Shown here: positions 3,001 through 61,166 of the stretch, piece by piece | Layout: every line of letters starts with the position of its first letter | How positions within the stretch are numbered: position 1 is the first letter of the stretch | Source of the DNA: Trichoplax adhaerens | Taxonomy: Eukaryota; Animalia; Placozoa | DNA: 64,000 nt | Assembly: GCF_000150275.1 (NCBI RefSeq) | Contig: NW_002060945.1 | Span: 259,872 to 323,871 of the forward strand | Direction of reading: 5' to 3' | Made by a program: the position numbers and the translations under genes | The notes under the pieces: generated by a model | Seen by the model: only the letters and a program-made list of their open reading frames with translations | The model's database searches: none | Told to the model about the DNA's origin: nothing

Positions 3001-5082
3001 TTTAAAAAGCAGACTGATGTAGATTAAAATCTATAAAGTAGCTTCGACATAGAGTTTTACAACCACTACGTGTTCTTTAATCGAGATATATACTACGCGA
3101 TAGCTTACAAGTTTCTTGAATCTGTATCTCAAAATGATGATATAACACTCATTATTTCCGCTTCCTTACTTAAAGTTTATTTAGGTACTTATGGTAATAT
3201 GTAATCTTCTTAAAATCTTATTTCCGTAATTTAGTTCAAATATGAGTAAATCGTGGAATGATAGTGAACAGTTAGCTCTATGCTTCCATGAGCTATTGAT
3301 TTCCCCGTTCTGTATCTGCTATCATCAACTGAGAGATGAGAATCAAGGCGGCAGATCGATAGACTTACTTTTCATTTCACGCTAAAGTATATTATTTTAT
3401 AAATGAATATCAGATACGATTCAGAAATCGGAGAAATTAGTATCATCTATTATAGCTATTATTTCTCCAAATTTCTATTAAACAGCAGGGTAATCGTACC
3501 GTCTCTAAAAAGTAGCTTTTCTATGTGTTTCAAGTTATCATGAATATCATCCATAATTAAAGATTAATATGCTGTATAACAGCATATCTGAGATAATCAT
3601 TTCTATTTAAAAGTAAAGCAGGATATTGCTTTATAGCTATCTATGTACTTTGCTTTCAAACAAAAGATAGAAAACGATGACAAATCTTTTTATTTGCAAT
3701 CCTTAATTAAGTTATAAGGTTGCTATTTGCGCCGTGTACTCAGTCCTTTAAAGTAAACTTATTGGCAATATCGTAACTATCCGTTAACAAATTGACATAT
3801 TTCGATTAATTCTAACTTTTAAATAAAAATATATATCAGATAGGATGATAGATCTATGCAATCGATTACCGTTGAGTGAGAGCTTTTAAAGTTAAAACGT
3901 AAAGAGCACATTATAGTCATGACAGAAAATGACAGAATTCAATACGGCTATCAATCAATATAACGAATTAGTTACTTGATATATATTATTAGACAATATC
4001 TATCATATAACATTATAACGTACCATTACTTGTTTTAAGGATATGATCAATTTCTACTTTTGTAATCTTCGAGAAGAATCTCTTCACGTCCCTGTCATGA
4101 CGTTCTGACAGTGTGCATAATGGGCTTAAATATAGTTGCAATCTCGTATAAATAGACAGAATTGTATATCGTAATAGTGCTCTACTGCAAAACAATATAG
4201 TCTATTACAGAGTGAATAATTTCATCGCATGAATGGATTTAAAACAGATAGTTTCTATATTTTTTCTTATATTTTGATGCTTAAGGCATTTTTTTATACT
4301 AAAAGTTTGCAATTTAATGAATAGCATACTGAGTAATATACATAGATAATTGTCTGTTTTACCAAGTTATGCAGGCGTTAATTATTCAAAATAATGTATC
4401 CTTGCAAGTTTATTCATATAGATGGGTTATGTCAAAACTAGTCCGACTCTTTATTTACCGGATCTACTATAAATGGACTGCTTTAACTATTTATCATTGA
4501 TGTATATTCGAATATATATCTATTTTGAGCAGTATTTCTTGGATATTATTTCCTAAAATGTTTTAGTGGATATACTGTAAATATTATTATCAAATGTACT
4601 GTTAGGAAGGTTAATAGTGTACATACTGTAAGATTAGGTCAAACTTAAAGTTAAACTAAATTTTACTATTCTATTTCTTTGAAAAAGACTGTATATCTTT
4701 ATATAACTAGGCAATTTTGGGGTAACGTAGAGACGAAATCAAATATTTAGAATATTAATATCTCAAGCAAATAATTGCCAGCCGTAATTAATTTTCTTGT
4801 TTTTGTTATAGTAATGGATATAGTTGCTTAGATGTTATTCATCTGTATAGGCACCTTACAATGATGTTGAATACAGAGTTACGTTATACTAAAATGGATA
4901 AATTTGTTTTGCGACAGGATTTAGCATAACTATCCATGATAGACTTCCGAGCAGGGAGGACACACTTATTGTCGTGCCATAACTTCTCTGTGGCATAGCT
5001 ACAAAATTTGAGTTGTTAATTGTGTTGGAGAACGCTATTCTGACCCTGTGTCTCTGCTAATGCCATTCTGATTGAAAAAAAA

Positions 5083-33663: not shown

Positions 33664-36600
33664 ATGTATATTCTGACAACTTTATTGGATCAAATGTGGT
33701 TAAAATGGGACAATATCCAGTCCATGTTATCCACATGGTGGTTAATAACAACTCTTATTGCCTTATCATTTTGCTGCTATCTTAAACGATTTTTATTGGC
33801 TAAATATCGCGATTGCAATAAAAATCCTGATCATAAAATGAAAGAGAATGAGGTCAGTTTAATAATTGATTAACGATTTATATTTCATATGTAACTCAAA
33901 ATAATCTAGCCACAATCAGAGCTTAATTTCTTCCTATACTTCAATTTTCTCCGTAACTTGACGTCAATATTTTCTGGAAAGATAAATTTGAATTTCACGC
34001 TAGCATATACTTTAAAAATACATCAGAAATCGTATCTACTCATCTTTCGATAATTAACTAATAGCTTAACTACCTTAAATCTACTCTAATAGCACTATCT
34101 AAATGAGAATACAATAGTCTATCATAGAATAGAAAGTATAAAATATAAGTTTGGTAAATTTTAAAGACGATATTACGAATTGTATTTTATAAATTTTTAC
34201 ATCGCTTTCAACTAAATAAATGGATCGCCAATTCGATAAAATACCAATTCGTGACCGTTACTTACCAATCTATTATATACCTTAGGCTATTTCTCTATCA
34301 TATTGATTTCAATTATGTCTAGTAAAGTTATTATCTTATCAATTTCGTATACTGTAATCCTTATATACGCTTAGTTAGATTATCCTTGAGAGCATTATAA
34401 TTATGACAGCTTTACCTATCTATTGTAGAGTTTACTTACTTATTCATTTTTTTCAGCCAACTCCATTTCGTTAAATTGGCAAAAGATTTGTTTATTTACA
34501 TAAACATGCATTCTGACTTAATCAGATTGATCAGTTTTCAAGACTCGTTAGTAATTTACGGTTGATAAAATAAAACTTTTGTTTGTCACAATACTCGCTT
34601 CTTTTTATAATAGAATCTTCAATGTCATTCTTAAATCATAATTGAGCTATCTACGCAGTCTTTAAATTTATTTACACTTAGTAAACTCATCGCCATTCTA
34701 GATGACCGGTAGTAATCGAAAGTAAACTTGGTACATTCATCAAGTACTATTAGAGCTGTATATTCGATTTAGACAGTAGTTAATTTAACATAGCTTCTAA
34801 TTACTAATTCTTGTCATCTAGCTACTTGTTCTAGATTTAATCTTCGATAGCTCAGCATCATAATCATGTACAGAATCACTGCTATCCATTTGTATTAAGT
34901 GGACGATGAATTAGCCACGCAAATAGCCATAGTTATGAAAGTCCAACAGTGCAGATAATCTTGTACTACTATGACTACATACTAGTATAAGATTAAAATT
35001 ATAATCATTATGAAATGATACGGATTTATGATATGCATAGCTACATGATTAATTAGTACCTAGTTCTTTGGTATAATTATCATCGTTCCATACGATTATA
35101 TTACATGTCATTGTAGTAATTATTACTAATATTTTGCTTCATTCAATTTCTTGTGAATTTATATTATAATAGCAATCTTTTATGTACTATCTATGCTATT
35201 CTTATAGATCAGTCTATTTCAGTTTCAAAATTTTAATTTAACCACTTCTATAGCCCGGTAATGGTTTGTAGCCATTTTATTTCATGTATCATGTAAACTC
35301 ATCTTTTACTGTATACATTAAGTATTTCTATCTAAAAATTGAGTGTTGATTCTATTAAGGCTAGAAGGCATTAAATAGAACTATATAGGTCATAAAGTAA
35401 CTCATGTAATGATCTTATGGAGAGATTTTGACGCCCTTTGATAGATAGGGCATCAATATTTAAACTTGACCTTAAGTGCATCCATACATGTTAGCACCAA
35501 GCTTGAAATTGTAGAAAACAAGGCAGTATCTCAGGCTTAGTATTAACTACATGTAGGGCTTCGCTTGCAGTTACATCGATGCAGCTAGACTACTCCATCT
35601 AATACACATAGTAATGTTCTCATTCCCGATATATGCGGATCTCTTGGTGAAAGGTTCTGTAATCTATTCGTATCTACACAGACTATACGTGCATATGCAT
35701 TGGTATAAGTCTAGCACTACAATTGTAGAAGTTTCTCCAGTTTTTCTACCGGATATTATGACAAGCTCATTCTTTATCGACTATATATTCGTATTGTAAA
35801 GTTCATTTGATAATTGCATCATATCAGTATCTTGTTGAATGATTTCAGTACAATTCTCTAGCAAAATTTACAGCCATAGACAATTCTATTAGTATGTCGT
35901 ACGATAATTAATTGAATCTGTCTGACAGATAATCTAAATATTTTAAAATCATTCTAGAGAGTCTAATATTATCACTTTGTATTCAATAAATCCTTATAAA
36001 GTCATATACATATTAATTTTAATCATTTTAAACAACAGTTTCGTCATAGAAACGATACGAACGGCAACGATAAGGTTTAGTCAAAGCAATTTTCAGTTAA
36101 GTATACATTACTGGTGTATTGTTACATACATAGTTACTCCATATTCAGAAAGTCCTTATAGAGTCATGTAGCGATAAACTTTAATTATTTCAAGCTGGAG
36201 TTTTCCTCATAGACGCGATATGAACAGCACCGATAACGTTTAGTCAAAGCAATTTTTAGTTCAATATATTTATTACTGGTTGCTACATAAAACCATTCCT
36301 TCAACAGAATAGCTACTACCTTCCATGTAACAGTAAATTAACAATTTTATCTTTTCTGTAGATTTGCTAACATCTTTAGGCTTGCTATTACTTTTTAATT
36401 ACTTCTTTCATTTCTTGCGAGATTGCAACTATGACTCGTTTTGTCTAGTGTTATGTATGAAAACAACTTTATCCAACTAGTTAAGCATCAAAATGCTATC
36501 TAACATTGCATCCAACTAATTGTTGTATAAGACACGCCGTGATGCTTTCGCAATATTTTAAAAATAAACAGAAAATCCGTTCGATTGGCTATTGTCTTAA

Positions 36601-39600
36601 TTCCACGTATTATTAGCTCGCCACAGAAAGTTATCGATGAATATGTTAGAGTATTCACGTAAATAGTTATGAGGTATATTTTTTCTCTCATATTTTAACC
36701 ACTATGAATAGAATAGATTGTTATGATTTTGCCCCAGGATATATCCTTGACAATTAATTCATTTATTTTCTAGTGTTATAAAACAAAAACTAGAAAAAAA
36801 ATTTACGATACACAAATTTATACGTGAATTATTTTACTAACTTGCTTTTGGTTATCATATGGTAAAGCTTAGAGAAAATGGTCACATATTCTATGTAATA
36901 GCAAATTTTACCCCAATACCCGTCATAATCGTATCTTACATACACATAACATTAGATATCATAAGTTATAATTTTGAAATAATTGAGGATGAAATCTCGA
37001 AGCGATGAAGCATCCTTTATTAATAATTATTATTAGAAATAAATGGATAGAAAAATCAGCTAATGGTAATACTGAAATTCAAAATTTTATCGATGCATTT
37101 ACCCTTCTATCTTGCGTCCTTATTCTATTCCGTTCATTTTGATCTACTAGGTCCATAGAGTCAGATATTCTGTCACCTATTTTAAATGTTTAGTTTTAAT
37201 CTTAGTTCAATTATTATTATTGTGAAAATCAATTATTGATCATCATCAGTTTTTTAGTATCTTATAATCTGAAAATGTTTAACTACTAATAGTAACTCTT
37301 AATAACTGTTACTCTTTACTCTTTTAACGATGACATTATATTGCAATCATACCAGTAAGCCTGCTACTAATGTTATTAGTAATCAATTACTGATTTCTTC
37401 TGCTGCTTGTCAATTCAGAAAAAAGTTTGCTATTATTTCTTTAAAGTAAAAGCATAAGGAAAAATTAAATTACTGTGACAGACTATGATTGTACTGAAAA
37501 GTGAAAAACTAGTAACCGATCTTATAGCATAGCAGGGCCTTGATTGATGTGAAGTCATCGAAAATATAAAAGAAAACTATATTTATTACTTTCAAATCTC
37601 TATAATAAATTTGATGATAGTACTGTTAATAGAAATTAGCGAGCTTAGTTAATAAGATTATTGAAATGGAAGAACTAAACTTAATAGCTCATTAGAAGAT
37701 ACTGTAATCTATACTGTATAATTGTTTCTGATAGTTTAAAGCTATACGCTGGCATTATAGTTTTTACTCAAAACCAATTTGATTTCTAAGTTTTTATTTT
37801 GACTACAAATCCGTAAAATTGTGTCATGCTATTTTCGATTATATTAACTTTTTGTTTACTATTCTGAAAAAGACTTATAACTAGTAAAGCCTTTTCTATT
37901 GGCAACAAATGCTTATGATATATGGCATTCTTGAGGGATCATTATTTTGTATTTGAAATTGCTGCGCTAGTCAAACTTAGTTATCAATTGTAGTGTTAAG
38001 TAGAATATTACAAACAGTATAGAACAACAAATAATATGCTAATTTGCTGCATATAATATCAAATACTCTTTATTGAAACGTGGTTTACTTCCAAGACTTT
38101 AGTTCCTTTTGTATTTTATAGATACCATACTTATTCAATTTGAATAATTTATAAAAAAATAAGCTAAAATTTGTCTGACATATTGATAATATCATCGTGA
38201 TTGCAGGTGTAGTTGTAATTTTAATTGTAAGTATGACATAAAATCTTAATTATCACGATGATAGCAGCTGATTTCGATAATTCCATATCACACTAAACGA
38301 ATTTTTCGATATACATTTATCAGAAATGTCACAAAGAAATTAAAATTTGTCAGGAATTTCCCATAAGTGGATGATACTCCTATTGTTGCCTGAAATAAAA
38401 TTAAAATTTACGCTGATGCAATTATTTAACAAGAAAAACCAACTTTGATCATTTTAATTATTCTCATCATAAAATGATGATCTATACATTCTTTAAAGTA
38501 TGAAGTATTTGCTATATTATTTTTTGAAAGAACTATAAGCAATAATTTCGAAATTAAAGTTTCTTTTTCTCGTTTTATGGTAGTGATAATTTACTGTACT
38601 TTACTCCAGATAAAAGAGAATATTTATAAAGACAGGATCTACTGTTGTGTTCTTTGAAGAATTCAAAGAAACTTTTTGGGAAAAGAATCTATCAAGGTGT
38701 ATTTTATAGTATTCCGTTGACGGTAAAATATGAATCAATAAGCATTCTCGGGTCCTACTTTTTGCATAAACCATGAATATAAACATCTAAGAACTACTAA
38801 TCACCTTAATCAGATCGAGTTTACTTCGTATCAATTAGTAAGGGATATTGATACCATCAAAAGTCATTCTTTTAATGCAGAGTTTTAGTTCCGCAGTACT
38901 GCCAGACAATATCTGTCAATAATATAAGAATGTAATACATAATCTGCTTCGAAGTGAATACTGATGCATTTTTTCTTTCGGCTTTTATTATCTTAAGATA
39001 CTCTTGCAGCAAGAGATTTTATAGTAACGCTGTAATTTTCTCGACCAGTTATCGCATGCTATGAATATTATTCCCTGTAGTGTAACCCTAAATTAGCTTA
39101 AGATTAAAGTCAGAATTAGAAGCGCAAATCATCAATAGATTGTACAATGGAAAATTTACAATTGATCTTGCGACTTGATAGGCAGGAAATGATTGTGTTG
39201 CTAAAAAATCATTCTGTAACAAATCATACATAAACAATGAATTTTGTTATAATAATTTAGATTGTCTGATCGTAGCTTGATAATTGTTAGCAGTTATAAG
39301 ACCGATCTAAATTATGTAATTAAGTGAAGTTTACAAGAAACTACAGTTCTTACATTATTATTTTGATATTTTATTACATTTCCCATTACTGCGGATGTAA
39401 AATCAAGCGAATAATGAACTGCAACAATTCATGCCATGCGAATACATCATTGCATAAAATATTTCATTTTTAGTTAAAATCATTAACATTATAGTTGATT
39501 TCTTATTAAGTTTCTTAAAGCTACTTACCTGGCTTTTAATTAACCAGCTAGATACTACGTATGTTATGTAGGCGCGATAGTACATGCGTGTATATGTAAT

Positions 39601-42600
39601 AGATGCATAAAAATATACTAACAACTCTAAATATGCAATATCTACCATACTATCATATGTAATAGAGCTAATTACTATTTCTTCTCATGGCATTATTCAT
39701 GGACTGGTAGAAGTTCTAGTGGTCCATATATTATATAATTATTGTACCGCGGCAAGTGATATATTGGAGTATTGCTTGGTTTTTAACTAAGGAGTTAATT
39801 ACTATATCTCCTCATAATATTATTCATGGACCACTAGAATTTCCAATGATCCGTGTATTACATAGTTATTGTACCGTGATAAGTAATAGATTAAAGTATT
39901 TTGCAGGATTTCATTTTTATGATGCATATGTGCTTCAAAAAAGATTCATAATAATATATTATTAATATTATCGTTAATTTCTCAAAGACTCTTAAAATTA
40001 CTTGCTTGACCTTTGAGTAACGAGCTAGAAGCTATTTTCACGGTACGAACTACCGTGAAGAAATAGCTATCTAAATTTGGTTAGTATAATATAGTGATAA
40101 TATATTACAACTAGTTACTTACAATAGGAATTGCTCTAATTATAAATGTGTTACAGTAAATTTAATGCTGTACTGCAATGTGCTCTGAAATGATTCTGTG
40201 AATGGACATATTGTAGTCCGACTGTAAAAATTAGTTAGTAGATGTTCTCACCTAAGTATTTTTATAAGATGACTCGTGAATGTTAGCTGCTGTAGAAGGG
40301 TATATAAGCCCGTCAGATAATTGAATAAAGTAGTTCTCAATTGTCTAGTTGAGTTTAACGTAGAATCAAAGGCGTCTAAATTCTTGTGAGATAGTTAAGG
40401 GATACTGAATCCCGGAGACTACCATAGTATTATTTTAATATTCCACTTTTATGGTACCTATGTGATTCAATAAAATTCATACTAATATATATTGATATGG
40501 TATAAATTTTATTTGAAACTTAGAGATTACCTCCTCATGTTCCATCATACATTCCCTATATTGGTCACGCTATATCCTTCGCTAGAGATCCAATACAATT
40601 TTTAAGACGTCAACATCAAAAGGTATTATCAAAACTATTCAGAGCAGTATTACAAACTATCATCCTTCTCCCGTGTTTTTATGTCACCTGTATTCCAGTT
40701 AGTACTTGAACTAGTGATGGATTTAGTTGGGACGAATAAAGAAATTTGAAAAGATATATAATGCATCGAAGCTAAACTTTTAGTAATTTATGGATTACGT
40801 ACAGATTCAAATTAATAATTTCCATCGGATTTATGATCTAGTGTATTTATGTACTTTCAAGCAAGGTTTCATTTTACTAATGAACCGTTAATTTTGATCT
40901 CATCAATTGCTAATACTAGTAGAATAAACTTACGTATCTTTAAATTCTTAAAATATTTGGCATGAATATTTAAAACACCTGTTCAGATTTTTTTATTAAA
41001 AAGCTGCTATTAGCTTACTTGACATTTCTATGCATTCATATTTTATTTTTAAAAATTAACCTCATACCTGGCAATATAGTATGGTGAAGTATTTAGTTTT
41101 ACTGTTCTTGGTCAAACGCTAACATACTTGGTTGGTTCACAAGCAAGTCAAACATTTTTCAATTCCAAAAATGAAGATTTGAACGCTGAAGACATCTATT
41201 CTCGCTTCACTACTCCTATCTTTGGACGAGGAGTCGCTTATGATGTTCCACATAAGGTAGAAGTAGTTGGCGTTACAAGGCGTTAGGCCATCACATTAAT
41301 GTTCAACAACATTTCGTATTTGATCGTTCTAGAATTTTAATTGACCAGTTTAAACTACCGTATCAGATCCTTCAGATATTTCATATTCTTTTATGTTTCC
41401 AATATACATTTATATTACATTTGCTTAATTCACAATCTTATTTCATCGTCATTGCGCCCAATCATAATAAACAGAATTCTTGCTAATATCTGAAGCCGTA
41501 ATCTACTGATACATGCTAATTATTTCATAAACATATATGAAACTATTCTGTGGTCGCCAAAAGCTCTAATTATTTTATTACAAGGATTCGTAAAGTTAGA
41601 GAAAAACTTTGCATCTGATTACTACAGTAGAGTTCACATATGCTGTGCAGCTTAGCACATTATGCAATAGACATTATAATAGCATACACGAAAAACTTGA
41701 AATATTTATTATAAAATGCTTTAAGCTTCCATATTGCTAAATATCTTATCAGAACTAGCAAGATGTATATACAATAGGAATATCTATTGACACAATTTAG
41801 TGCGACTTCTAGCTGGATATGCTAGATCAGTTAGCACTTATAAGATTAGAGCTCTAGCTGATAATGTACACTTAGCTGTACTTCGCTATCAATAAATTGT
41901 GTTATATAGGTATTATTGATTTATTGGTCTTAACTAGCATTTTTGATAGTGCGCAATTCAAATTGTTTGTTATGGTATCTAATATTGGTGCGGCATTTAT
42001 ATTCAATTTTATTTTACTGTTCTTAACTAACATTTTTGATAGTATGCAATTCGAGTCATTTGGTACGGTATCTAATATTAATGCGGCATTTTATATTAAT
42101 TTTATAGGTCTTTCTGGAACAGAAAAAAATGTTAAAATTTTCACTGACCAATGGCAGATTTCAGTCATATATACAAATAATCGAAGAAGAAACGGAAAGT
42201 TATATAAAATCTTGGAATGATGAAGGACACCAAGGTTTAGAGACTACATAGCTACTAGTAGCAATTTATATATACATATGCATATATACGTATACTGTAT
42301 GTTACGGTAACTTGATTTTAGATTACATATAATGGGAACACTGTAATTCTTCTATTGATCATAGATTTGCAACAAATATTTACGGAATTGATGTTGATGA
42401 CAGCAAGTCGATGCCTCCATGGTCAGTTTATCTTCAATGCCAATACTTTAATTCAATCGTTAATAGGATATATTTTAATAGTTTACAAGCTTATTACTTA
42501 AGAAACTTTTCACTGTGTGAATGATTGGCGTTCCAAAAATTTAAAGCTCAGTTGATTATAATTATTCGAATCTGAAAATTTTGTTTAAAAATATATACTT

Positions 42601-45600
42601 TATTCAGATAATTTTACATGATACCTTCAATGTATATTGTAGAACTAAGAGATGTAAGAACAAAATTTCTTGAGCTTTTAATTATCATATATTTTTGCTC
42701 GTAAATAAATCTGTACAGTAGTAATGTACTATATATGCTTAAAACATTAAAGGTTAAAACCCGAAGTCGTTCAATGTAAGTGCGACAAATTAGTGATTAA
42801 ATATGCGAATAGTTACTGTATTTTCCATTACTAATTTTTTTATCGTGTTCAACTTAAGACATTGGCTATATTTAAAGCAGAAAAAGCGTGAAAATGAGTA
42901 CTTTACTTAAATGCATGACCATTAAAAATATCATTTTTATACATCTTTAGAATTTGATGAAAGTCAAGAGTTGCTTCTTTTACTGCTTTATAGGATATTA
43001 TCGTACTACATCTATATGATAAAGGGAATTGCATTAATTTTGATTAGAGTCTATAAAATCGCAGTGCAGTCCTTTCATATAATTATCAAAGCTACAGTAT
43101 TTTTGGATAATTTTCTATTTAGCAACTTATGCCATGTTTTGTAGTTCATGTCCTGTCAGCTTTTCGTTCGGATATTTTTAATTTTAGTTATATATTGATG
43201 TATAACGCTTCTTGTCTATTCAAGGGACAATTTAAGCCTTAAATAGGTCTAAATATCAAATGAAACTCTTCGAAATTACTACATACTAATGCCTAATGAT
43301 TTCGACTTCAACGCAGGCAAAGAAATTCGAGGAATGTTGAATATTAAAGTAGCCAAATTATATCGGGACTTAGGCAAGGGCTTTTGCTACGCTGCCTGGC
43401 TATTACCCAGTTGGCTACCAATTCCTACCTTTAGGTAAACGAAGCCAGTCTGTAAATTATATGATAGTCTCTTTTCTCAACAAGTGCTGGGATTTATTTA
43501 ATAATAAAATTGTTGTTTTACCATACAATAGGAATCGAGATAAGGCCAATAAAGAAATGAAAATTATATTCGATCAGGTACTTAATACAGATTATCGGCT
43601 TTTTATTGAAAACATCAATTCATACTTGTGGAACTATATTGTCTCGTTAAATAAATGCAAGTATACATTTATCTTTTCTTGCTTCATTACAGTTCTTTCG
43701 AAATTAATAAACAGCACAATAATGCCATTTTTTGTTTATAATATTTAGTAGTTATATAATGAATTTCCAAATCAAATAGGTATTACTATTTTTCTGTATT
43801 TGAGAATATTTATCATCTCAGTATATCTAAATGATATTGATTGAAAATTAGCTTAAAGCCATTTTCTAAGCTGACCGTTTTTAAGATGATTGCCGCAATA
43901 TAATGAAACTACGGATGCGCTATATGATCTGATATGATATCTTTAGAAATCAATTCTTAATATTGGACAATGTTCTATAAGTATTCATCTCCGTGGTAGT
44001 ATAACAGAATATTTTGTGAATTAACTTCTTTACCATACATTTTTGCTGTTATTGATATCGATTTCTACCATCGCTTGCGACGCTCGTTATGTTCAACTAG
44101 GTGATATATTAAATTCGTTTAATGGGTGATTACGAGAACTGTTTAGAACTGTATATCTTCACGAATCGAGTCTGATACTGATCGTGTGTGCTTACGAGTA
44201 TATTTTTAGCTTGATTTGTGCAGATTTATAAATACACAGTAGGAGTAAATTTGAACACTTAAACACATCTCTTTTTTCATTATGACGGATGAATGCTACG
44301 TAAATCTGTAAAATATCAATCCACAAGTTTCTAGGTGTTTTATGTTTGTAATTATTGCTTTTGAACAATTATTAAAGTGAAGTTTTCTATCTGCTATTTA
44401 CTATAGTACATTTATGCTTGATGACTATTTTTATAATGCTCTGATACATTATTATCATTTCGGATATCAAATTTTTTAAATCTTGTGTTTAGCCATTGTT
44501 AGACTGCTATTTCTATTATTTGAGATAATGCTTCATGAAAACTTATTTTAGTACTCTTTATTTGCAATGGTGGTAATATTTGCAGGTTATTGATAAGAGA
44601 ATAGAAAATAATGTGATCGAAGATGATATTCTCGACACTTTAATGAATTCCAAGTATAGGTAAAATATATTAGATGTAAAGTAGCTTACTTTAAATTGAA
44701 CTCTCAATGATTTTGTGAAGAGCTTGCGATAAAATACCTTGTTAAGAGAAATCGTACGTTAAGTGCGCACATTTTAAAAAAATTAAAAGGAAATGACAAC
44801 TGATATTATATAACCTCGTATGTTTTCGTACTAGAAATGGACAATATTTAAGTAAGAATGAAATTTCTGGAATGTTACTTGGTTTTTTACTTGCTGGACA
44901 GCATACTTCTTCGACATCAAGTTCATGGTTAGGATTTTATCTTGCTAAAAATAAATTATGGCAGGTAATGCGCTATAGATATAATTGAAATAAACAATAT
45001 ATTTCTAACACTTCTTTACTACGTTATGCTAAATTTCCATACTATCGATTGTATCATCGTATCATATTTTAAGCGATGTGCTTAGTTTTGATATCATACT
45101 TAAGAATGCATATAAGATAACAAAAATATTGTAAAATAAGCTAAGAGTTAAAGTTTTAGACAACATTGACGCTGAACATTCCATATTTGCTTTTTTTCCC
45201 TCCGCTACCTTTATAGTAGTAACTGATGATAGCAACATTTATTTCTAATCGTATTTTGATATTATATTATAAAGTATGATAGTTTTATCAAAAGTACGGA
45301 TAATTATAGAACTTGTTTTATCGATAGTATCATACTTATCAATCTCTGAAAATTTAATACAGAAAAGCTATAATTAAAATCGTGTATTGTATTTAATCTA
45401 TTAGTTTAAACTAGAATGATAATAGTAAGCGTTTTAGATAACATTCACACGCACAATTGTAGTTTTACTATATCCACAGACGGATTATCTGTTTCATGAC
45501 TGTAATAGGATTCCTGCTTTAAAGAGCTACAAGAAGTTAGCGTTACTGAAAACAATTCTATTGACTCTGATAAGGTAAGAATGATTTATAGATTTATTTA

Positions 45601-47198
45601 AGCACTATTTACTGTTTTAAGATGGTTATTCTACAGCTACCTTTACAGAATTATCAAGCTAACACACTTAAGTACATATAAAGATTTTAGTGAGTTACTA
45701 AATCGTAAGGTATACTGTATTAGTTTCAGAAGAGGAATGAAATTCTTTAGCTAATTAATTATCTACTGATCCTATAATGCCATTTCGACGAAGATTTTAA
45801 ATTTGACGTCTTCCACTAAAATATACATATTAGCATAGACTACAATAGAGAAGTCGTTTCTCAAAATATCCATTTTTGTGTCATTTAGATTTTTTAACAC
45901 TTACATTGCATATATTCAATATCAAGTCTAGTATCAATGGCTCAAAATATTTCTCCTTCATTTATTCTTAGCTTCTTAGTAAAATTTTATCATAATTGCG
46001 TATTTGTAATTTCGGCTAGAAGCCTTATATGCTAAATTCATTTATGATTTATAAAGCAACCAAAAATTGAACCATTATTTTTTTGGATAATGTGATAATT
46101 AATTGTAGTTAAAAGAACTAAATACATTGGAATGCTGTATCAAAGAAGCACTACGATTAAGGCCACCAGTTATGACAATGATTAGATCTGTTAAAACTCC
46201 ACAGGTAGAATTTTGGCTTTGTGACTGATTTAAAAAATTTCTATGCTGTTATGGATGAATATTTGATGTCCTCTAAAATTGCTTCATCCTGTATAACAAG
46301 CCATATTTACCATTTCTGCCACAAAAATAGCATTACAAGAACTTCTATATTCCAGTCGAACACCAAGTTTGCGTATCTCCAACGATCAATCAATCATTAC
46401 CGTCTGTTTGGAAAGACCCAGAAGTTTTTAACCCTGATAGGTGACGAAGCAATAAAATTTTATGAAATCAACACTATATCATGACCTCATTTTAGTAACA
46501 TAATTTAGAAATCTCTAAAAGCTTTTAGTGCGAATATATGCTGAATTATCTGACTTCATATATATTAAATATTCGAATATCATAAAATATCCTATGTCAA
46601 CTTTAAAGAATAAATTTTGTTTGATGCGCTTGATGGATATAGATTCAAAGGCGATGGTTGCTTTCGAAATGAAAAATTTTCTTATATACCTTTTGGTGCA
46701 GGTGAGTCAAGATGTAGTAACGATAATTAGCATTATCACATATAATTAATTTAATTTTAGTAATTATAAATCGCAATTTTGCACGGATTCTTGATATTAC
46801 ACTTCTCTTAACGATTTGTACATCTCAAGTTGTATTTATTAGTTGAAAATTTACATTACCAATGGTTTGAAATGAATAGATGGTATTATATTTGCTAATA
46901 CGAGTATAATATCATCTATTTAATACATTTTAAATAGTATTAATTATAAATGAAGACGAGTACCTTTTATTGTTTCGTTAAAAGTAATCTTATACGTAAT
47001 TATAATCATCTTATACGGGTAGGTCGGCATAGATGCATTGGAGAAATTTTTGCTTATTTGCAAATGAAAACCATATGGACGGTGCTAATTCGACATTTTG
47101 AATTTGACTTGATAAATGATTACTTTCCTACGGTTAATCATAGTAGCCTAATTCATACACCAAACAATCCGGTTATTGCATATAAAAGAAGAAAGTGA
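33664..47198 (+). CDS. CYP51: Sterol 14-alpha-demethylase-like cytochrome P450, divergent paralog (CYP51 copy A); 14 exons, ~507 aa, intact
   Basis: Exons 33664-33852 (hydrophobic N-terminal anchor; least certain exon), 40524-40622, 41080-41256, 42108-42234, 42365-42421, 43317-43434, 43532-43577, 44586-44659, 44835-44964, 45509-45574, 46109-46204, 46331-46440, 46643-46701, 47023-47198. All introns are GT-AG and phase-compatible. Motifs: [17 protein letters not shown]-helix [18 protein letters not shown] (ExxR), FNPDRF and heme motif [11 protein letters not shown]. Confidence 0.93.
41925..42110. repeat. ~90-bp tandem duplication just before CYP51 copy A exon 4
   Basis: TCTTAACTA(G/A)CATTTTTGATAGT..GCAATTC...GGTATCTAATATT..TGCGGCATTT occurs at ~41928 and ~42020. 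It accounts for the spurious ORF 41897-42220. Confidence 0.8.
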
Positions 47199-49143
47199 CC
47201 CATCATATGGCTTAACTTAACTACCACTCTGTTGGTGATATAATATTCTATAAATGTTGTTTACCAAACGGCATGCCCTAGTATTGCTGTATCAGTTTGT
47301 GATGAATAAGGAAATCGTTAAATGCTTAAATTGTACTTCTTGAATCTGATTCTGATCCAAATTTCTCGAATGGAAAACTACTGCGACAATCGTTCATCGC
47401 ATTCTAGTTGCTTGTATATCTTCATATTATATTACGCGTCCATCCACATATCGATTTCATGTAGCTTCAGTTCGGGGCCAGAATAACTAAAGATGGCAAG
47501 ACTGTAGCTCTATTAGTGTTTAATAAATTATAATTAAAACATAGACTATTACAGTATAAGAAACAGAAATATACTAATTTTAAAGCTCTGGTCAACTGAA
47601 AATTGTGCAATGAAATAATTATGATGATAAGCAATAATAAAAGAGATAATCAACATGAATACATCTTTACCGTATAAATCTTGATACTGTGTGAGCCTGC
47701 TTAATACAGTATACTTGTGTGATCCTAAACCATAAGGTCGTAATATTCTGGTAGATGTGAAATGATAATTAATCTATACAAGGTAGTCTCACTTCGATAG
47801 TGTAATAGAATATACATATCTGATGAACTTTCATACTTGTATATTTTCATTGATGAGGTTGTTTTCCCGATTGGATCATTGAATGTTGAATTTATTTAGT
47901 ACAATCTAGGAAATTGAAGATGCTTGTATTGATTTAGAGAAAAAATTTTAAATGTGAAATTGGTAAAGTGCTTTCAATGATAATGAAAATAAAAGTCTGC
48001 CAAAAAATTTCTTTCTTTTAATCGTATTCATATGACTATACATTTGTAATTATTTAGATCATAATTTACTGTACATGATGTTATGCATGTGTGTTACGTA
48101 TAACAATCAAATGGTCACAAACAGCTTGCGACAAGATCACCTAAACCTAATCGGAAACTAATACGTAACTTGTGTTCGCATTAAATTAATAAAGTCTACT
48201 TAACCAACCTATAACAGACTGTATGATTCTCGATTAAATATTTGAGCCCAGTAAAGAGTGGTTTCGACAACCCAAGGTCAATAAGGCACGAAGCCACACA
48301 GTTAACGTTTCACTGGCAAAGAAAAATTAAAGCACTAGATTCTAAATATTCCTGCTCAGTTGCCCATCAACTATTTATAATGCTTAAATATAGCAGATGG
48401 TACAAACACTAATTACCTCTGAACTAATTAAATAAGCTAAACAGAACTTGAAAGCTGGATATATTAATACCATATCAAGTAATGCATGCGAAATAAATTG
48501 GTCTTCCTTAGTAATCTTACATTATACACACAATACTGCTATAGACGTAAATAAATTACTAACTAATTTAGAGGTTATTATCTGCTCAATGTGGCAGCAA
48601 TGACATCAACTGCACAACCTAAGTTATAGTTAAAGGGGTTAATTAGTCTTACGGAGCCTTAGCAACATAGCACAACCATAGCAAATACGACTAAGTAACG
48701 CTCAATTAATGTCGTCGTGAATTGCTGCAATAGTTTGTAATAGGTTAATACAATATTGTAGTTATCCACATCTCCTTGAGATAATAAAGTTCAATCAGCT
48801 ATAGCTGAGCGAAGTTAAGTTTTATTAATACTAATCATCCAGTTAAAAACTTAGAATCTCTTTTCTTTTATAGTTAAATGCATTTATCCATAGATTAAGT
48901 AACTTTAGGTACTCTACAAATATTTACCAAAATTGACCAAGCTATAATGTACTGCAGTGTCTAAACTTTGTGTATTCTTAAAACTATAAAATATCATAGA
49001 TATTGCCCTGCATGTTAAATTTTAAAACGTAAACTATTAAAATCAATGGAACTATTTTACATCATTTATTTCTTTAAACTATCTTTTCAATATGTTGCCA
49101 AGTACAAAACTACCAACTGAGAGAAACTATAGTTAAGATCTGA

Positions 49144-54136
<4,993 letters not shown>

Positions 54137-54599
54137 TCTTGCCCCTTCAACAATTCTAATTGTAGCAAATACTACTTGCGATGACGTATAGAAATACATA
54201 GTTGTAAGTCAATTTGAAAGTACTTGCAGCAAAAAAGACATCATTATTTCACTTCTACGTTAGTGAGACACGTTTTTGTCTTTAAACTAAAATGAAAACT
54301 TTAAGTATTATGTATCGGAATATTTGATATCAGTCAGGACAATTCTGTCAAAATGTTCATTTTCACGAAATGCTATTTATTCATGAGAATGCGTATGTTA
54401 GATTGCAAACGCTATAGAGTAGTTTTTAATAGGCAAAGGAAGTACTGTAATCGTACATTCAACAAGTCTTCAATACAGAACACCTCATCACATTCGTATT
54501 ACTATGCGTATTACTTTCAGATTATGCGTTATCACTTTCTTTTAGCAATGTCATGTGCATTGTATTTGTATTCGTATAGTAACTGTAGCTTTCGATCAG

Positions 54600-55440
54600 T
54601 ATCTTGTACGAACAGTATGATCGAAATATAGCATTGGAATTTATAAATTATAACACAGTTGTAATTAAATTCAATCCAGTTAAAATGTCAGCGGATAGTA
54701 ACGGCTTTTATAACAATTTATTCTAAAGTCAATAGCTATTGAACTATAACTTATAAGTTAGTTAATCTTGCTGATGTTACAACAGTATATGCAATACTTT
54801 CAATGCAATGCAAGCCACATGTATTGTGCATCGTGTATCAATTATAGCTTTCAATCAACATCTTTTACGGACAGTATGATTGAAATGTAGCATTGGAATT
54901 TGTAAACGGTAGCACAGTCTAAGTACAGTAGTGCTTTGAATGCAAATCATACCACATGTACGTATTGTGCGTCATGTAGCCATTGCGGCGTTCAATCAGT
55001 TGCTTTACGAATAGTACACTATGATCGAAATGCAGTATTGGAAAATGTAAATGATAATATATGCAGTAGCATGCATGCAATACAAACCACATGTACTGTA
55101 CTCTAGTGTACATTGTGTAGCAACTTTAAATCGGTTGATTTCAGAACAATATGATGGAAATGTAGCATTGGAAAATGTCAATGAGAATATGGTATATGTA
55201 GTAGTGTGCATGCAATACAAACCACATGCATTGTGCCTTGTGCAGTAACTCTAACTTTTAAAATCGGCTGATTCAAGAACAGTATGATTGAAATGTAGCA
55301 TTGAAACATGGAAATGGTGCCATGCAAACGACAAGTATTATGCATTGTGCAGTAAGTATAACTTACTTAAATCGGTTGATTGAAGAATACTGTACAGTAG
55401 TATGATCAAAATGTAGTACAACAGTGGAATTTGTCAATGG
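54600..55440. repeat. Degenerate tandem repeat, ~6 copies of ~120-150 bp, between LSS and CYP51 copy B
   Basis: Anchor ACAGTATGAT(C/T)GAAATGTAGCATTGGAA at ~54612, ~54871, ~55019, ~55146, ~55279 and ~55399. ATGCAATACAAACCACATG also recurs. Confidence 0.85.
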
Positions 55441-56354
55441 TAATATACTGTTCGGTAGTGTGAACCGAGTATCTCCTGCATAAATTGTGAATTTGTACGT
55501 AGGTATGATAACATTTTTCTACATTGTGCAATACAGTAGAGTAAAAATATCAACCAAATCCATGAATAAATATTTGGTAGTTCTCAAGTTCCGTTTTCGC
55601 TCAAGTGCAAAATAAACATTGTCGCAGGTAAGCATAGCGTCAACTCAGTTGAATGTCTATCATCAAGCACTCATCATCCGTACCTATTGGATACTGGCGT
55701 CGATGGCATACAAGGTGATATATAATTTATTTGGACGTGTCTACGGAGTCACTTATTTGATTGTAATTTACGCAGTTTTGTTGTTCTTGATAGCGTTTCT
55801 AACGTTTTATTACTCTCTACTTTATGATGAAATGAAACTATTTTACGTGTTGGTTGTATAATTTTGTTTGGCATTGAGAAGATTGAGTCGAGTGAAATGT
55901 TGACTGAGCTTGGCACTGCCATGTTTTGCATGAAAACAAACTAACTGGTCGAGCATTGCTGTCTTTGAGTTGAGCTACTATTCATACAGTACTCCTACTT
56001 TGCAATGGATAGTCCAAATTAGGATGATTTTGTTATTCAATCAAGTCTTCTCTACCCATTGGTAGTCTATCTAATCTTTTTATCATGAATTATCAAGGAA
56101 TAACTTACCAAGAAAAAGAATTTCACTGGTAAACAATCTTCAAGTTGCTCAGTGAAATGGAGGATTGACAAGATAGGCAACTAGTGACTTACTGTACATC
56201 CAACTATAGTACACAGGATTAGCATGGAGTACATATAGTACAGTACAATAAGTACAAGAGTTTGGCCTTGTTTCATTTCAGTACCGAACACTGACTGACA
56301 GGACGCTGGACAGTGGACAGGCTTCGAAGGGTTAAAAGGTAATGGAGCCATATT

Positions 56355-56460
56355 GAATGAACCAATCAAAAGAGAATCAATCGATCATGACCATGACGTG
56401 ATGGAGTTATCCAATGAGATGCTAGAATCCTTCCTTATTATTCGCAATTGGAGTGACTCG
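56355..56460. promoter_or_regulatory. Candidate shared (bidirectional) promoter module: three CCAAT boxes around an ATGACGTGAT element
   Basis: CCAAT at 56362 and 56411, ATTGG at 56447, ATGACGTGAT at 56393-56402. It lies in a locally GC-richer patch between the divergently transcribed LSS and CYP51 copy B. Confidence 0.35.
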
Positions 56461-56514
56461 ACCAGTACCAGACGACATGAGGGCCCGGCTCACTTTCATC
56501 ACAGACTGTCAATA

Positions 56515-57080
56515 AAGGTACACTGTGTACAGTACTATACTGTACACAGTGTACAGTACAATCGTGTGTAAAAAGTTTAAGTACTGTCAATTAAATTTAG
56601 TACTGTACTGTGAAATGCGCATGAGCTAACCCAGCTAACCAACTGTAAAACGCTATTAAAAATGAAAGATGTAGTACCTATGTAGAACGACCGGAAAAAT
56701 GCACCGTGCGGTACGTAATCCAACAGATGCTTGTTGTTTCATGCTCACTAAAGTGCTCACTCACTTAGCTATAACTTTTATTACCATACTTTTTACCATC
56801 GAGGTCAAAAATAACTTACCTACACACTGCCCTGTACAGTGTACAGTACATTACAGCACCGTACAATGTACTGTACTGTAATGAATCGTACTGTACAGTA
56901 TGTACTGTAGCGTACAGTATGTTCTCTACAGTACAAGTAAATATACTGTACACAGTCAAGTTACAATACTGTACAGTGATACATTGTACTGTGCTTTCTA
57001 CAGTATAACCCTTACTTACAGCGTTAACTCGACGCCATTACTACAGTACTCAAGTTAGGCAGCTACCGCGCAGTACTGTA
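56515..57080. repeat. TACTGTA/TACAGTA-rich low-complexity palindromic tract upstream of CYP51 copy B
   Basis: Many TACTGT/ACAGTA words. Perfect 17-bp inverted repeat at 56518-56554 and a 12-bp inverted repeat at 56841-56876. Confidence 0.8.
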
Positions 57081-57243
57081 TGACCCATTGAAGGTTAAGG
57101 CGTTACTCTGTCATACTTTCACTCGTACAGTAGGAAACTGCAGCACTCGGGTGAGAAATTTGAAAAGTTGGACGTGACTGCTATCCTCCAGTTGGACACC
57201 AGGCGTGGTAAATAGTGGTTGTACCTTTCAAAGTGGAAGAAAA

Positions 57244-60200
57244 ATGGCGCTAGGCGATCTTGGATATCAACTAATCAATCATGCTAGGACATTTATCGAC
57301 GGCTATGGCAACAGCACGCTTGTTCTGTTGGCAACTACGATCGTTTTAGCTATTCTTTTGGCCTACAAGCAGGTCAAATCGTCAGTAGCAACAAGAGGCA
57401 TGGTATGACAGCAGAACATACATAGTAGCATATGATACATTTTCCAATCATGTTGAATAAGTTAAGATATTCAATAAATTCAGCGATATCATCCAATGAT
57501 ACAGAGTAGATGATACAATCACTAGCATCCATTAGCCTACGTCAAAGTAACTACTTACAGCATAGACTGATTTTACAGCTACTACTGTATACTCATCACT
57601 TGCTACAATTGTGCTCAATGATATTGCATGGACTAGAGAATGAAACTTGATGACGTATCCAAGTCAATGATTCAGTTTATGTTATTCTTCAACTTGTTCT
57701 CCAATCGATTGCTTGCCCATTACTGCTACTGCTACTACTACTAATGACCAAAGTATTCGTTCCTCCTGATTTATTTATAATTCTAAATATTGTTCTCATG
57801 ATGTAGAATCTACCACCACACATACCATCCAGTATACCATTTCTTGGTTGCTCAATAGAATTCTCCAAAAATCCTATTCTCTTCTTGCAAAATGCTCACA
57901 AGAAGGTAAGCAATGCTGGAATAATATCTTATCATACATCTCTCATAAGTTCAAGTTAATGATTGTATACCGCTACTCCACTATTACAATATGAAAAGAG
58001 TCAAATGTTCAATTTACAATATTTGATCTTTCATATACTCATACTGGAGTGAGAAGGGTAAAGCAGAAACTTCTAAGACATTAGAATAATACTTATGGAT
58101 TAGTCTTACAAGTCCCTGGGTAAAGTATACTAATTATCCAATATTCTCTTTCCAAATACTAGTACATGCATTGTATAACGGTATACAACACTGCATGACA
58201 CTATTCAAATTGATTATTGAAAAGCATTTGAAAGTCAGATGCAAAAAATGACTAATAACTTTTACATGATAAAGTATGTAAAGCTAGCTGCTTGAAAGGA
58301 TTACCGTTTGTGAAATGATCAAGTGTGTTATTGCAGCATCGTAGTTATAAACTGTTGCCGCTATGACGATGATCTTATTAACCTTATCTATGCCACTTGT
58401 CTTATCTCCCCATATATACTCCATATTCGCATGACGTAAAAGTACGGGGAAGTATTCAGTTTTACTATGGTTGGCAGCACGTTTACGTACCTAGTTGGAT
58501 CAGAGGCCAGTTCACTCTTTTTTAATTCCAAGAATGAAGATTTAAACGCTGAAGACGTATATTCACAACTCACTACCCCGGTATTTGGGAAAGGCGTAGC
58601 TTACGACGTTCCACATAAGGTATCCGTAAGAAGAATGATGCAAACTGTGATACTTTGTGTCAGATATATTATTGGACATTTCTCACAATTCTGCATACCT
58701 TGGCCAACAACGTTTTTGATAATATAATCAATAATTGATTGAGAATCTAGTAATTAAAAGAAGTCAACATGTTTGATCCAAACTTTTGTCTAGGTGTTTC
58801 TTGAACAGAAAAAAATGTTCAAGACTGGACTTACCATTGCCAGATTTCAAAATTACGTACCTATGATCGAAGAAGAAACTCGTGAATATTTCAAACGATG
58901 GGGAAATGAAGGAGAAAAAGGTATAGCATTATAACTATGTCCAATCTTTTGTTAACTACTAAACTATATAAAGTAATAGAACCTTCTATCTGCTGTATTA
59001 TCGATGTGTATATTCCTATTGCTTAAGGTAATCAAATAGAAATAGTTACCTTGTGTTCTTCTTTATTTTAGATTTATTTGTTGCTCTTTCGGAGTTAATT
59101 ATTATGACGGCTAGTCGCTGCTTGCATGGTAAGTACAACAAATAGATTTCAATGTACATTATGGAATGATATAACATCAATGCTTCTCTTCCTGGTAATC
59201 GTATTGCACAATACATTTATTAAAAAGAAATTATCATATTCTAGGCAAAGAAATTAGGTCTTTACTGGATGAGAGAATTGCCCAACTCTATGCTGATTTA
59301 GATGGCGGCTTCACGCAGTTAGCCTGGCTTTTACCAGGTTGGATCCCCTTTCCGAGCTTCATGTATGTATCAATGATGATTTGATATACCGGCAGAGAGA
59401 TATAATTATAATACAATTAAAAATAATAAGACAAAACGTAATTACTTCATAACCATTTACAGTAAACGCGATAATGCCAACAAAGAAATGAAGAGAATTT
59501 TCCGCTCGGTAAATTGTATTAGATAGCGATGAATCAACATTAAATTTTGAATGTCATTCGATGGACAGGATGTATTTAATTTTTCTTGTATACAAATGTA
59601 ATAGGTTATTACAAATAGGATTAAGGAACAAAAATATGAAGATGACATGTTGAACACCTTGATAGAATCTAGTTACAGGTTACCATTGAGTAGAGTTGAT
59701 TAATAGAGAATAACATTCGTTAATGTAATACATTAGTGCTCGAGTACTTTAGCATGATAAAACGAGTTTTAAAATTGATCAATAGAATAATTTGGATATT
59801 AACTATGATATTATTATTTAATTCTATTTGTAGGAGCGGTCGCAAACTAACTGAAGACGAAATTGCTGGTATGCTTATTGCATTGTTATTGGCTGGCCAA
59901 CATACATCCTCAACAACAAGTTCATGGCTAGGCTTTTTCATTTCTAAAGATAAAAAGTGGCAGGTCGGCTGTAGACTTAATGCGATGCAATGACATCACA
60001 CATATAATTTCAAATCTTGTTGGAAATTTGTTATTAGCGACAGTTATTTGATGTGTATTAATTAATTATTCGATCGGACCGGACTTTATTTATGACACAG
60101 GATAGATTGATTGAGGAACAGCACGAAGTTTTTGGAGATGACGACGATTTGGAACCTTTATCTTATGAGAAGGTTTGACGTTGAACGTATTATCGAAATA

Positions 60201-61166
60201 GTTCTAATTTACGCGCACTAACAAAACTATAGTAGATAGAATTCAGGTTAGAATTGAATAACATGGCTCTTGGAATATTCCTGAGCGCACTTCTACGTTG
60301 ATATATCGCTATAATAAATATACTGTAATGCAGAAATAATTGCCGTTTCAAAAGTTTGGAGCTTTATCATTCGTCTCGTTCTTGCACTTATGATTGTTGA
60401 TGGCAAATTTTGATTTCGCGTTGATATTAAACGTATTTCTTATTTCATTGTAGTTGAAAGAATTAAAGCATCTAGATCGTACTCTCAAGGAGACTCTACG
60501 TCTTCGCCCACCCATCATGACAATGATGAGAATGGCTAAAACACCGCAGGTGCGAATTTATACTAATTGTACGTTGTATATCTGTTATGTGTCTCTAAGT
60601 CTTATTAAATAACAACTAGAGTATCTCAGTATACTATTAATAATAAAAATAGAAAGTTAAAGGTTACACGATACCAACTGGGCATCAGATATGTGTATCT
60701 CCAACCGTGAATCAAAGATTATACTCGGTGTGGAAAGACGGTGAAACTTTCAATCCTGATCGGTACGTAATTTAATTTATTTTTAACAAATAGTATGAAT
60801 AAAACACTCGTATTTAAATTTTGTCTATTGTCGGTTAAATCGAAATAGATTTGCTGAAGAAGGTCTTGATAACAGTGAAAAATTTTCATATGTACCTTTT
60901 GGAGCAGGTAAAGCCATTAAAATGATTATACATTTTGTGATATAATCGATGTTAGAGATTAAGTGCTTATTATAATCGCACATATAGGTCGACATAGATG
61001 CATTGGCGAATTTTTCGCTTACGTCCAAATAAAAACTATCTGGTCGGTTTTAATCCGAACTTACGAATTAGATTTGGTAGACAATTACTTTCCAGAAGTG
61101 AATTTTACGACCATGATTCATACACCAAGTCGTCCTTTAATTCGGTATAAGAAGCGTAGTTCATAA
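57244..61166 (+). CDS. CYP51A1: Lanosterol 14-alpha-demethylase, canonical (CYP51 copy B); 14 exons, ~500 aa
   Basis: Exons 57244-57402, 57807-57905, 58443-58619, 58794-58920, 59072-59128, 59245-59362, 59463-59508, 59605-59678, 59834-59963, 60101-60172, 60454-60549, 60653-60762, 60849-60907, 60988-61166. Motifs: N-terminal anchor [80 protein letters not shown] and TTMIHTP. Confidence 0.96.

Follow-up and report, generated by a model that had tools for sequence, protein, structure and literature searches.

Why would an animal genome keep the genes for two consecutive steps of sterol synthesis side by side, and why would one of the two be present twice? This question is raised by a 64,000-nucleotide stretch of the Trichoplax adhaerens genome (contig NW_002060945.1, positions 259,872 to 323,871 of the forward strand), here called the window, in which all positions are counted unless another contig is named. 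It contains a gene for lanosterol synthase (LSS), located between two genes for the sterol 14-alpha-demethylase CYP51, which we refer to as CYP51A and CYP51B. A first-pass annotation of this sequence had described the three genes as intact and as forming a compact sterol gene cluster between 33664 and 61166. Gene models and intron checks agree with the intactness of all three at these positions, and both ends are exact, 33664 being the start codon of CYP51A and 61166 the stop codon of CYP51B. The models, made from window coordinates and used in spliced form for the identities, substitution rates and tree reported below, are as follows.

33664..47198, plus strand: CYP51A, the divergent and probably placozoan-lineage paralogue; 507 amino acids, 14 exons, from the splice-site model, translation and RNA contigs
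CYP51A exons 1-7, plus strand: 33664-33852, 40524-40622, 41080-41256, 42108-42234, 42365-42421, 43317-43434, 43532-43577
CYP51A exons 8-14, plus strand: 44586-44659, 44835-44964, 45509-45574, 46109-46204, 46331-46440, 46643-46701, 47023-47198
54037-49144, minus strand: LSS (lanosterol synthase, oxidosqualene cyclase); 717 amino acids, 24 exons, guided exon model, single copy
57244..61166, plus strand: CYP51B, the conserved copy at the probable ancestral position, head-to-head with LSS; 494 amino acids, 14 exons, splice-site model
CYP51B exons 1-7, plus strand: 57244-57384 (or -57402), 57807-57905, 58443-58619, 58794-58920, 59072-59128, 59245-59362, 59463-59508
CYP51B exons 8-14, plus strand: 59605-59678, 59834-59963, 60101-60172, 60454-60549, 60653-60762, 60849-60907, 60988-61166

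Both CYP51 copies are located on the plus strand, and six-frame translation shows their exons to be of the animal type and places the exons of the cyclase on the minus strand between them. CYP51A and LSS are therefore arranged tail-to-tail, with a gap of 1.9 kb, and LSS and CYP51B head-to-head, with a gap of 3.2 kb. Every intron of the three genes follows the GT-AG rule; the first-intron donor of CYP51B is either 57384 or 57402. The two CYP51 genes have their intron phases in common and identical exon lengths in 12 of the 14 exons. The window accounts for every CYP51 and LSS locus of the 105.6-Mb genome (1414 contigs), two for CYP51 and one for LSS.

The cyclase model is identical at 716 of 717 residues to the protein annotated as 'Lanosterol synthase' in Trichoplax sp. 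H2, and is approximately 65% identical to vertebrate LSS. It has both the N- and the C-terminal squalene/oxidosqualene cyclase domains at full length (Pfam SQHop_cyclase_N was matched on an LSS exon), and it keeps the catalytic aspartate motif D-C-T-A-E, with no change in this region relative to the LSS of mammals, sea star, amphioxus and brachiopod. Among solved structures, an LSS exon matches human lanosterol synthase best. The catalytic aspartate region is preceded by a valine, as in the aligned animal LSS sequences; we take this valine to be the lanosterol-type state, as opposed to the cycloartenol-type state, so that lanosterol is the predicted product. For the two P450 genes, the Pfam p450 domain was matched on single exons of both copies, and exon 3 of CYP51B best matches human CYP51 structures (E 9e-28), with the fungal, protozoan and bacterial enzymes far behind. 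The heme-thiolate motif of the P450 fold, the B'-helix/B'C-loop motif (Y-x-x-L/F ... P-x-F-G-x-G-V-A-Y-D) and the I-helix motif (A-G-Q-H-T-S-S) are intact in both CYP51A and CYP51B. Judged by these signatures, both copies belong to the CYP51 family, with sterol 14-alpha-demethylase as their predicted activity.

Absence of the linkage from related genomes would have pointed to chance adjacency. We placed the LSS proteins of other animals in their genomes and inspected them with 10-kb flanks, and the opposite was found. In five other animals, a p450 gene encoding approximately 484-504 amino acids lies directly upstream of LSS on the opposite strand, thus head-to-head, and exon-by-exon tblastn with the Trichoplax models, in which every exon gave a match, identified it as CYP51 in all five. 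The gaps listed here lie between annotated gene ranges, whereas the 3.2 kb of Trichoplax is counted from ATG to ATG.

Branchiostoma: head-to-head p450-LSS, gap 0.5 kb
Acanthaster planci: head-to-head p450-LSS, gap 1.7 kb
Lingula anatina: head-to-head p450-LSS, gap 1.4 kb
Ptychodera flava: head-to-head p450-LSS, gap 0.6 kb
Lamprey, Lampetra planeri: head-to-head p450-LSS, gap 2.3 kb

The orientation in these animals matches that of LSS and CYP51B in the window, and the five lineages (cephalochordate, lamprey, hemichordate, echinoderm and brachiopod) span four phyla. Moreover, co-localisation of LSS and CYP51 with conserved microsynteny has been reported in four demosponges (Adv Sci 2026, PMC13483135): CYP51 of Acanthella cavernosa adjoins a functionally validated lanosterol synthase, and the two genes are also co-localised in Geodia barretti, Halichondria panicea and Xestospongia testudinaria. 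The CYP51-LSS linkage is thus neither a chance adjacency nor specific to placozoans, but an ancient animal gene pair. The divergent pair seems to be at least as old as the last ancestor shared by placozoans and bilaterians, or older still if the sponge report concerns the same pair. This also means that the idea of a compact cluster invented in the Trichoplax lineage does not hold, since its core is a two-gene CYP51B-LSS pair that is found in other animals and co-localised in demosponges.

The neighbourhood of the pair extends this conservation beyond the two enzymes. On the other side of LSS, with CYP51A in between, the following gene has its tail facing the tail of LSS.

1..27245, plus strand: 3' part of a giant coiled-coil gene with a PACT domain at its end (pericentrin/AKAP450 type; PF10495, 72 bits, at 26382-27242)

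This gene extends upstream of the window by 6.6 kb or more, and its 3' end was taken as the close of the open frame with the PACT domain. Its open frames include one of 2556 amino acids (7607-15274), one of 1511 amino acids (16902-21434) and one of 1693 amino acids upstream of the window. The Trichoplax genome has no other PACT gene (one genomic match). In Ptychodera, a gene encoding 4784 amino acids with a PACT domain (PF10495, 85.6 bits) is likewise located tail-to-tail with LSS, and the corresponding gene of Acanthaster, encoding 5021 amino acids, gave a partial PACT match of 23.7 bits (cut-off 25), truncated at the end of the locus. In the lamprey, LSS is followed by KRIT1.

This arrangement bears on the human genome, in which the first-pass annotation had noted LSS and CYP51A1 to be unlinked. 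They are indeed on different chromosomes, but the human state looks secondary. The gene order at human 21q22.3 is LSS, MCM3AP, YBEY, C21orf58 and PCNT (PMC13723271), and AKAP9, LRRD1, CYP51A1-AS1 and KRIT1 share one locus at 7q21.2 (PMC11438911). The Pfam family name itself points to PCNT and AKAP9 as the pair of human proteins with this domain, and the single Trichoplax PACT gene is their one placozoan counterpart. Human and Trichoplax are therefore alike in having a PACT-domain gene beside LSS or CYP51, with KRIT1 beside the pair in the lamprey, and differ in that the two enzyme genes are separated in human and one PACT gene corresponds to two. The simplest reading would be that CYP51, LSS and the PACT gene formed one block in the ancestor, to which KRIT1 lay close in the vertebrates. 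In Trichoplax, no wider synteny with the genes around human 21q22.3 and 7q21.2 was found, and the homologues of YBEY and MCM3AP lie away from the block. The search for the KRIT1 N-terminal domain gave no match in Trichoplax, but none in the control genomes either, and is uninformative.

If CYP51B is the ancestral partner of LSS, what is CYP51A? RNA contigs from four runs of three studies show introns 2-11 of this gene spliced exactly as modelled. Two of the contigs reach 156 nt upstream of exon 2, and the 30-nt consensus of their loose ends equals 33821-33850, ending at the GT donor, which confirms exon 1 as first proposed, with its ATG at 33664, and shows the first intron to be 6.67 kb long. 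One CYP51A contig measures 1995 nt, long enough for the whole mRNA. CYP51A is therefore expressed and correctly spliced. Its protein is 58% identical to CYP51B and 53-58% identical to amphioxus, sea-star and brachiopod CYP51, compared to 65-69% between CYP51B and the same three proteins. Over the 290 columns that are complete in six sequences, CYP51A and CYP51B are 65% identical and CYP51A is 55-60% identical to the others. In a maximum-likelihood tree of six sequences, CYP51A is sister to CYP51B (SH-like approximate likelihood ratio test, SH-aLRT, 97.7; ultrafast bootstrap, UFboot, 93), with a branch length of 0.59 versus 0.095, a difference of approximately 6-fold. Six residues common to the two copies depart from an otherwise invariant bilaterian state, and among the 157 sites at which four bilaterians agree, 35 differ in CYP51A and 9 in CYP51B. 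The sister grouping, the unequal branches and the shared derived residues together argue for a duplication in the placozoan lineage, after which CYP51A appears to have evolved approximately six times faster than CYP51B. The synonymous divergence (dS) between the copies is saturated, at 2.1. Between H1 and H2, CYP51A shows 14 synonymous and 6 non-synonymous differences, and the resulting ratio of non-synonymous to synonymous rates (dN/dS) of 0.11 indicates that the gene is constrained today, under purifying selection.

The divergence of CYP51A includes a residue with a known role. At the marker position of the B' helix, CYP51A has phenylalanine, whereas CYP51B, the CYP51 of the five other animals and 45 of 47 database fragments have leucine. 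Plant CYP51 generally has phenylalanine at this position as well. The marker corresponds to L134 of human, I105 of T. cruzi and F105 of T. brucei CYP51, and it sets the preference for lanosterol/eburicol versus a strict requirement for obtusifoliol, a role that was shown with the T. cruzi and T. brucei enzymes (PMC7947880). CYP51A thus has the state of T. brucei, and leucine is the animal and fungal state. The 'spare' CYP51 of the first-pass annotation is therefore real: the paralogue is transcribed, under constraint and divergent, and one of its changes falls on a residue known to determine the substrate. A lead on its age comes from two Logan fragments covering exon 3. Fragment P0412 resembles the CYP51A exon (88% identity), with the same phenylalanine and placozoan-type residues, and fragment P0410 is 92% identical to the CYP51B exon; both have the placozoan-type 'PHK' end, and glutamate where both Trichoplax copies have aspartate. 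As a lead only, this suggests that a more distant placozoan-like organism may have both CYP51 types.

Taken together, we consider it probable that the locus is an ancient animal microsyntenic block with the CYP51B-LSS pair as its core and the PACT gene beyond LSS, in which CYP51A is a placozoan duplicate that likely still acts as a demethylase. The core would be a divergently transcribed pair whose products convert oxidosqualene to lanosterol and then carry out the 14-alpha-demethylation, and it would be kept together by shared or interlocked cis-regulation of two enzymes that are made together, with the giant gene for a PACT-domain centrosomal protein placed tail-to-tail beyond LSS. In the placozoan lineage, CYP51 would have been duplicated, the copy CYP51A inserted between LSS and the PACT gene, and long introns gained; the B'-helix leucine would then have changed to phenylalanine while the family signatures were kept. 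Most likely, CYP51A is still a sterol 14-demethylase whose substrate range or expression domain has shifted. In jawed vertebrates, the block would have been split by duplication and reciprocal loss, leaving LSS near PCNT and CYP51A1 with AKAP9 and KRIT1. The locus resembles the ancient metazoan microsyntenic and bidirectional pairs, which are non-paralogous neighbours with a fixed orientation across phyla and for which cis-regulatory constraint is the favoured explanation (Irimia et al. 2012, PMC3514665). It differs from typical pairs of this kind in that the partners are consecutive enzymes of one pathway.

Several observations weigh against this explanation. There is no CYP51 within 10 kb of LSS in Patella, Haliotis and Diadema, thus the pair can be lost or stretched. 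The Trichoplax intergenic region of 3.2 kb is longer than a classical bidirectional promoter (under approximately 1 kb). The functionally unrelated PACT gene has been kept beside the pair, hence neighbours can persist here without a metabolic reason. As to the vertebrate part, the genome duplication and reciprocal loss that would explain the human split are drawn from gene lists only; a YbeY-like match (26.3 bits) lies on the scaffold of the window but 7.8 Mb away, and the SAC3/GANP genes, homologues of MCM3AP, are on other Trichoplax contigs. Finally, the CYP51 tree comprises only six sequences, is built from tblastn projections and has no outgroup. In two further genomes the pair was not seen either: Dictyostelium purpureum has no CYP51 within 10 kb of LSS, and in the pipefish the head-to-head neighbour of LSS is YbeY and not CYP51. 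Other YbeY-family matches were found on tiny contigs (C41:27-227, 68.5 bits; C952:2394-2489, 30.7 bits), the one on C41 being much stronger than the eukaryote-like match on the main scaffold. These two contigs may be bacterial, from a symbiont or a contaminant.

The same observations feed the strongest alternative, that CYP51, LSS and the PACT gene are simply an ancestral neighbourhood left unbroken in slowly rearranging genomes (placozoan, amphioxus, ambulacrarians, brachiopod and lamprey), with no selection for co-regulation. An unrelated PACT gene next to LSS in both Trichoplax and Ptychodera would be expected of such a relic, as would a long Trichoplax intergenic region, the lack of a CYP51 within 10 kb of LSS in the gastropods Patella and Haliotis and the sea urchin Diadema, and the split of the pair in jawed vertebrates, where in each case sterol synthesis was not lost. 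However, a relic does not readily account for the divergent arrangement seen in five other lineages (four phyla), where 0.5-2.3 kb separate the gene ranges, and to which the demosponge account adds co-localisation in sponges, and it is unexpected that a randomly surviving pair would encode consecutive steps of one pathway. We therefore regard a neutral relic as unlikely, while it is the alternative that survives best.

A second alternative, the one nearest to the first-pass annotation, takes the placement of CYP51A directly beside LSS at face value and supposes a dedicated placozoan biosynthetic cluster, in which CYP51A would no longer serve primary sterol synthesis and would tailor a specialised triterpenoid made from the LSS product. 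The precedent is the avenacin cluster of oat, reportedly described by Qi and colleagues in 2006, where the oxidosqualene cyclase gene Sad1 (beta-amyrin synthase) adjoins Sad2 (CYP51H10), a divergent CYP51 duplicate of the housekeeping demethylase. Sad2 no longer acts as a demethylase but modifies beta-amyrin, and the oat cluster is young, lineage-restricted and provided with several further tailoring genes. The fast evolution of CYP51A at sites that CYP51B has mostly kept (35 versus 9 of the 157), its purifying selection, the leucine-to-phenylalanine change at the substrate-determining residue, and the recurrence of an A-type exon with phenylalanine in the placozoan-like Logan fragment would all fit such a recruitment. 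Trichoplax is unlike oat, though, in that its LSS belongs to primary metabolism, CYP51A has all family signatures including the B'-helix, I-helix and heme-binding motifs, no further tailoring genes are found inside the block or close to it, and the pair at its core is old. With these signatures intact and further tailoring genes absent, recruitment in the plant style is less likely; the adjacency to LSS is explained by duplication beside an already ancient pair, and there is no known product. We consider this possibility remote.

Whether the locus may be called a metabolic gene cluster at all depends on the definition used. Two non-homologous enzymes of consecutive sterol steps are linked here, with gaps of 1.9 and 3.2 kb, and to this extent the description as an animal metabolic cluster stands. 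However, the block contains only two enzyme types, where plant and fungal metabolic clusters are defined by three or more, or by further pathway or tailoring genes, and the neighbouring steps of the pathway are elsewhere, with squalene epoxidase (SQLE) encoded on contig C1408 and reductases of the ERG4/ERG24 family on C1394. A larger sterol cluster was rejected on these grounds. On C1394, ERG4/ERG24-family matches are found on both strands within 5 kb (733907-738528), which we read as two convergent neighbour genes, possibly a second small sterol-gene neighbourhood.

The linkage itself is not new for animals. The demosponge report (PMC13483135) is the closest known case: the two enzyme genes adjoin with conserved microsynteny, as in Trichoplax, and the sponge cyclase was shown to make lanosterol, while one CYP51 is present there and two here. 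What is documented here beyond the available text of that account is the head-to-head orientation, the occurrence in non-sponge animals and the PACT and KRIT1 flanks. A literature check for earlier mention of the linkage, which the first-pass annotation had left to be made, thus returned the demosponges and no mention of a placozoan. Nor did the literature searched, the supplementary lists of microsynteny surveys aside, mention the head-to-head orientation or the pair in a placozoan, chordate, ambulacrarian or brachiopod; equally, no mention was found there of the PACT/KRIT1 flanks with their bearing on the human gene order, or of a divergent, expressed placozoan CYP51 with phenylalanine at the marker position. 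Outside the animals, cyclase and CYP51 genes are also linked in sterol-producing bacteria. The CYP51fx of Methylococcus capsulatus is an intron-less ferredoxin fusion (PMC7947880), whereas the animal pair consists of divergent, intron-rich genes; there is no evidence of a historical tie between the bacterial and animal arrangements.

The DNA between the three genes was searched for further genes. There was no Pfam match in its ten largest open frames, and no Rfam family and no tRNA between CYP51A, LSS and CYP51B, in agreement with the earlier statement that no other recognisable gene lies between them. Two features of the intergenic DNA are listed here.

54038..57243, no strand: LSS-CYP51B intergenic region between the start codons, 3.2 kb, with putative shared or adjacent promoters as deduced from the gene models
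56201..57000, no strand: GTAC-rich, self-complementary short-repeat arrays, identified by GTAC density, 250-1000 bp upstream of the CYP51B ATG

The region 56201-57000 has 6-14 GTAC per 200 bp versus approximately 0.7 expected, the strongest GTAC peak in the window, and Tandem Repeats Finder (TRF) arrays at 56865-56975 fall within it. A further GTAC-containing self-complementary repeat array is located at 6201-6400, and the flanks contain such arrays at approximately -50.8 kb, +94.5 to +95.2, +97.4 to +98.5 and +116.5 to +118.5 kb relative to the window. The arrays translate to Y/C/T/V runs in all frames, and several are located directly upstream of gene starts, for example those of an ABC-F gene and CYP51B. 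In addition, there are tandem duplications of approximately two copies each, of 127 bp (39665-39900, in CYP51A intron 1), 93 bp (41920-42105, in CYP51A intron 3) and 133 bp (55016-55316, in the LSS-CYP51B intergenic region).

The arrangement was compared with the independent assembly of Trichoplax sp. H2. Contig NOWV01000429.1 again has CYP51A and LSS tail-to-tail, with 97-99% identity over 39698-54665 of the window, so that the mis-assembly that could have undone the linkage is not borne out for CYP51A-LSS. An assembly artefact, in which a single CYP51 would have been duplicated by haplotype mis-assembly or by a collapsed or expanded repeat, has only the old draft status of the assembly in its favour and can be dismissed with near certainty, given the 58% protein identity of the copies, their saturated dS and differing intron lengths, the agreement of H2 and the spliced transcripts of CYP51A's own. 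The divergence between H1 and H2 is very uneven, with 2.3% in the CYP51A introns (dS 0.053) and 0.6% in the adjoining LSS region (dS 0.007). Compared to the window, H2 has an insertion of approximately 630 bp within CYP51A intron 7, and there is a gap of approximately 67 bp near 42532-42599.

Within 60 kb, the flanks of the window contain an ABC-F gene, a G-protein-coupled receptor gene, a dynein heavy chain gene, SF3B1 and GalNAc-transferase genes. Judged by eye from the translations, the dynein heavy-chain gene seems to begin right after CYP51B on the plus strand, from 62809-64000 to approximately +88 kb; beyond it, still within 60 kb, are SF3B1, an oxidoreductase gene and two GalNAc-transferase genes.

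What does this locus mean for animal sterol biology? Non-homologous metabolic gene clusters are rare in animals, and the divergent sterol pair is a case of gene order kept around primary metabolism. The block also offers a simple account of why human LSS is near PCNT and CYP51A1 is with AKAP9 and KRIT1. A bolder, joint claim is conceivable, although we hold it to be doubtful: that CYP51-LSS with the PACT gene is an ancestral pan-metazoan regulatory unit serving consecutive sterol steps, which has held together for over half a billion years and came apart in jawed vertebrates solely through genome duplication with reciprocal loss, and that CYP51A is at the same time the first animal CYP51 paralogue whose substrate pocket has been re-tuned. 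If this were true, placozoans would have a second route of 14-demethylation, for example for C4-monomethyl or diet-derived sterol intermediates. CYP51A and CYP51B, which differ at a residue known for sterol choice, form a natural experiment on CYP51 substrate specificity, and the locus may bear on which sterols early animals could make, and hence on the reading of sterane biomarkers.

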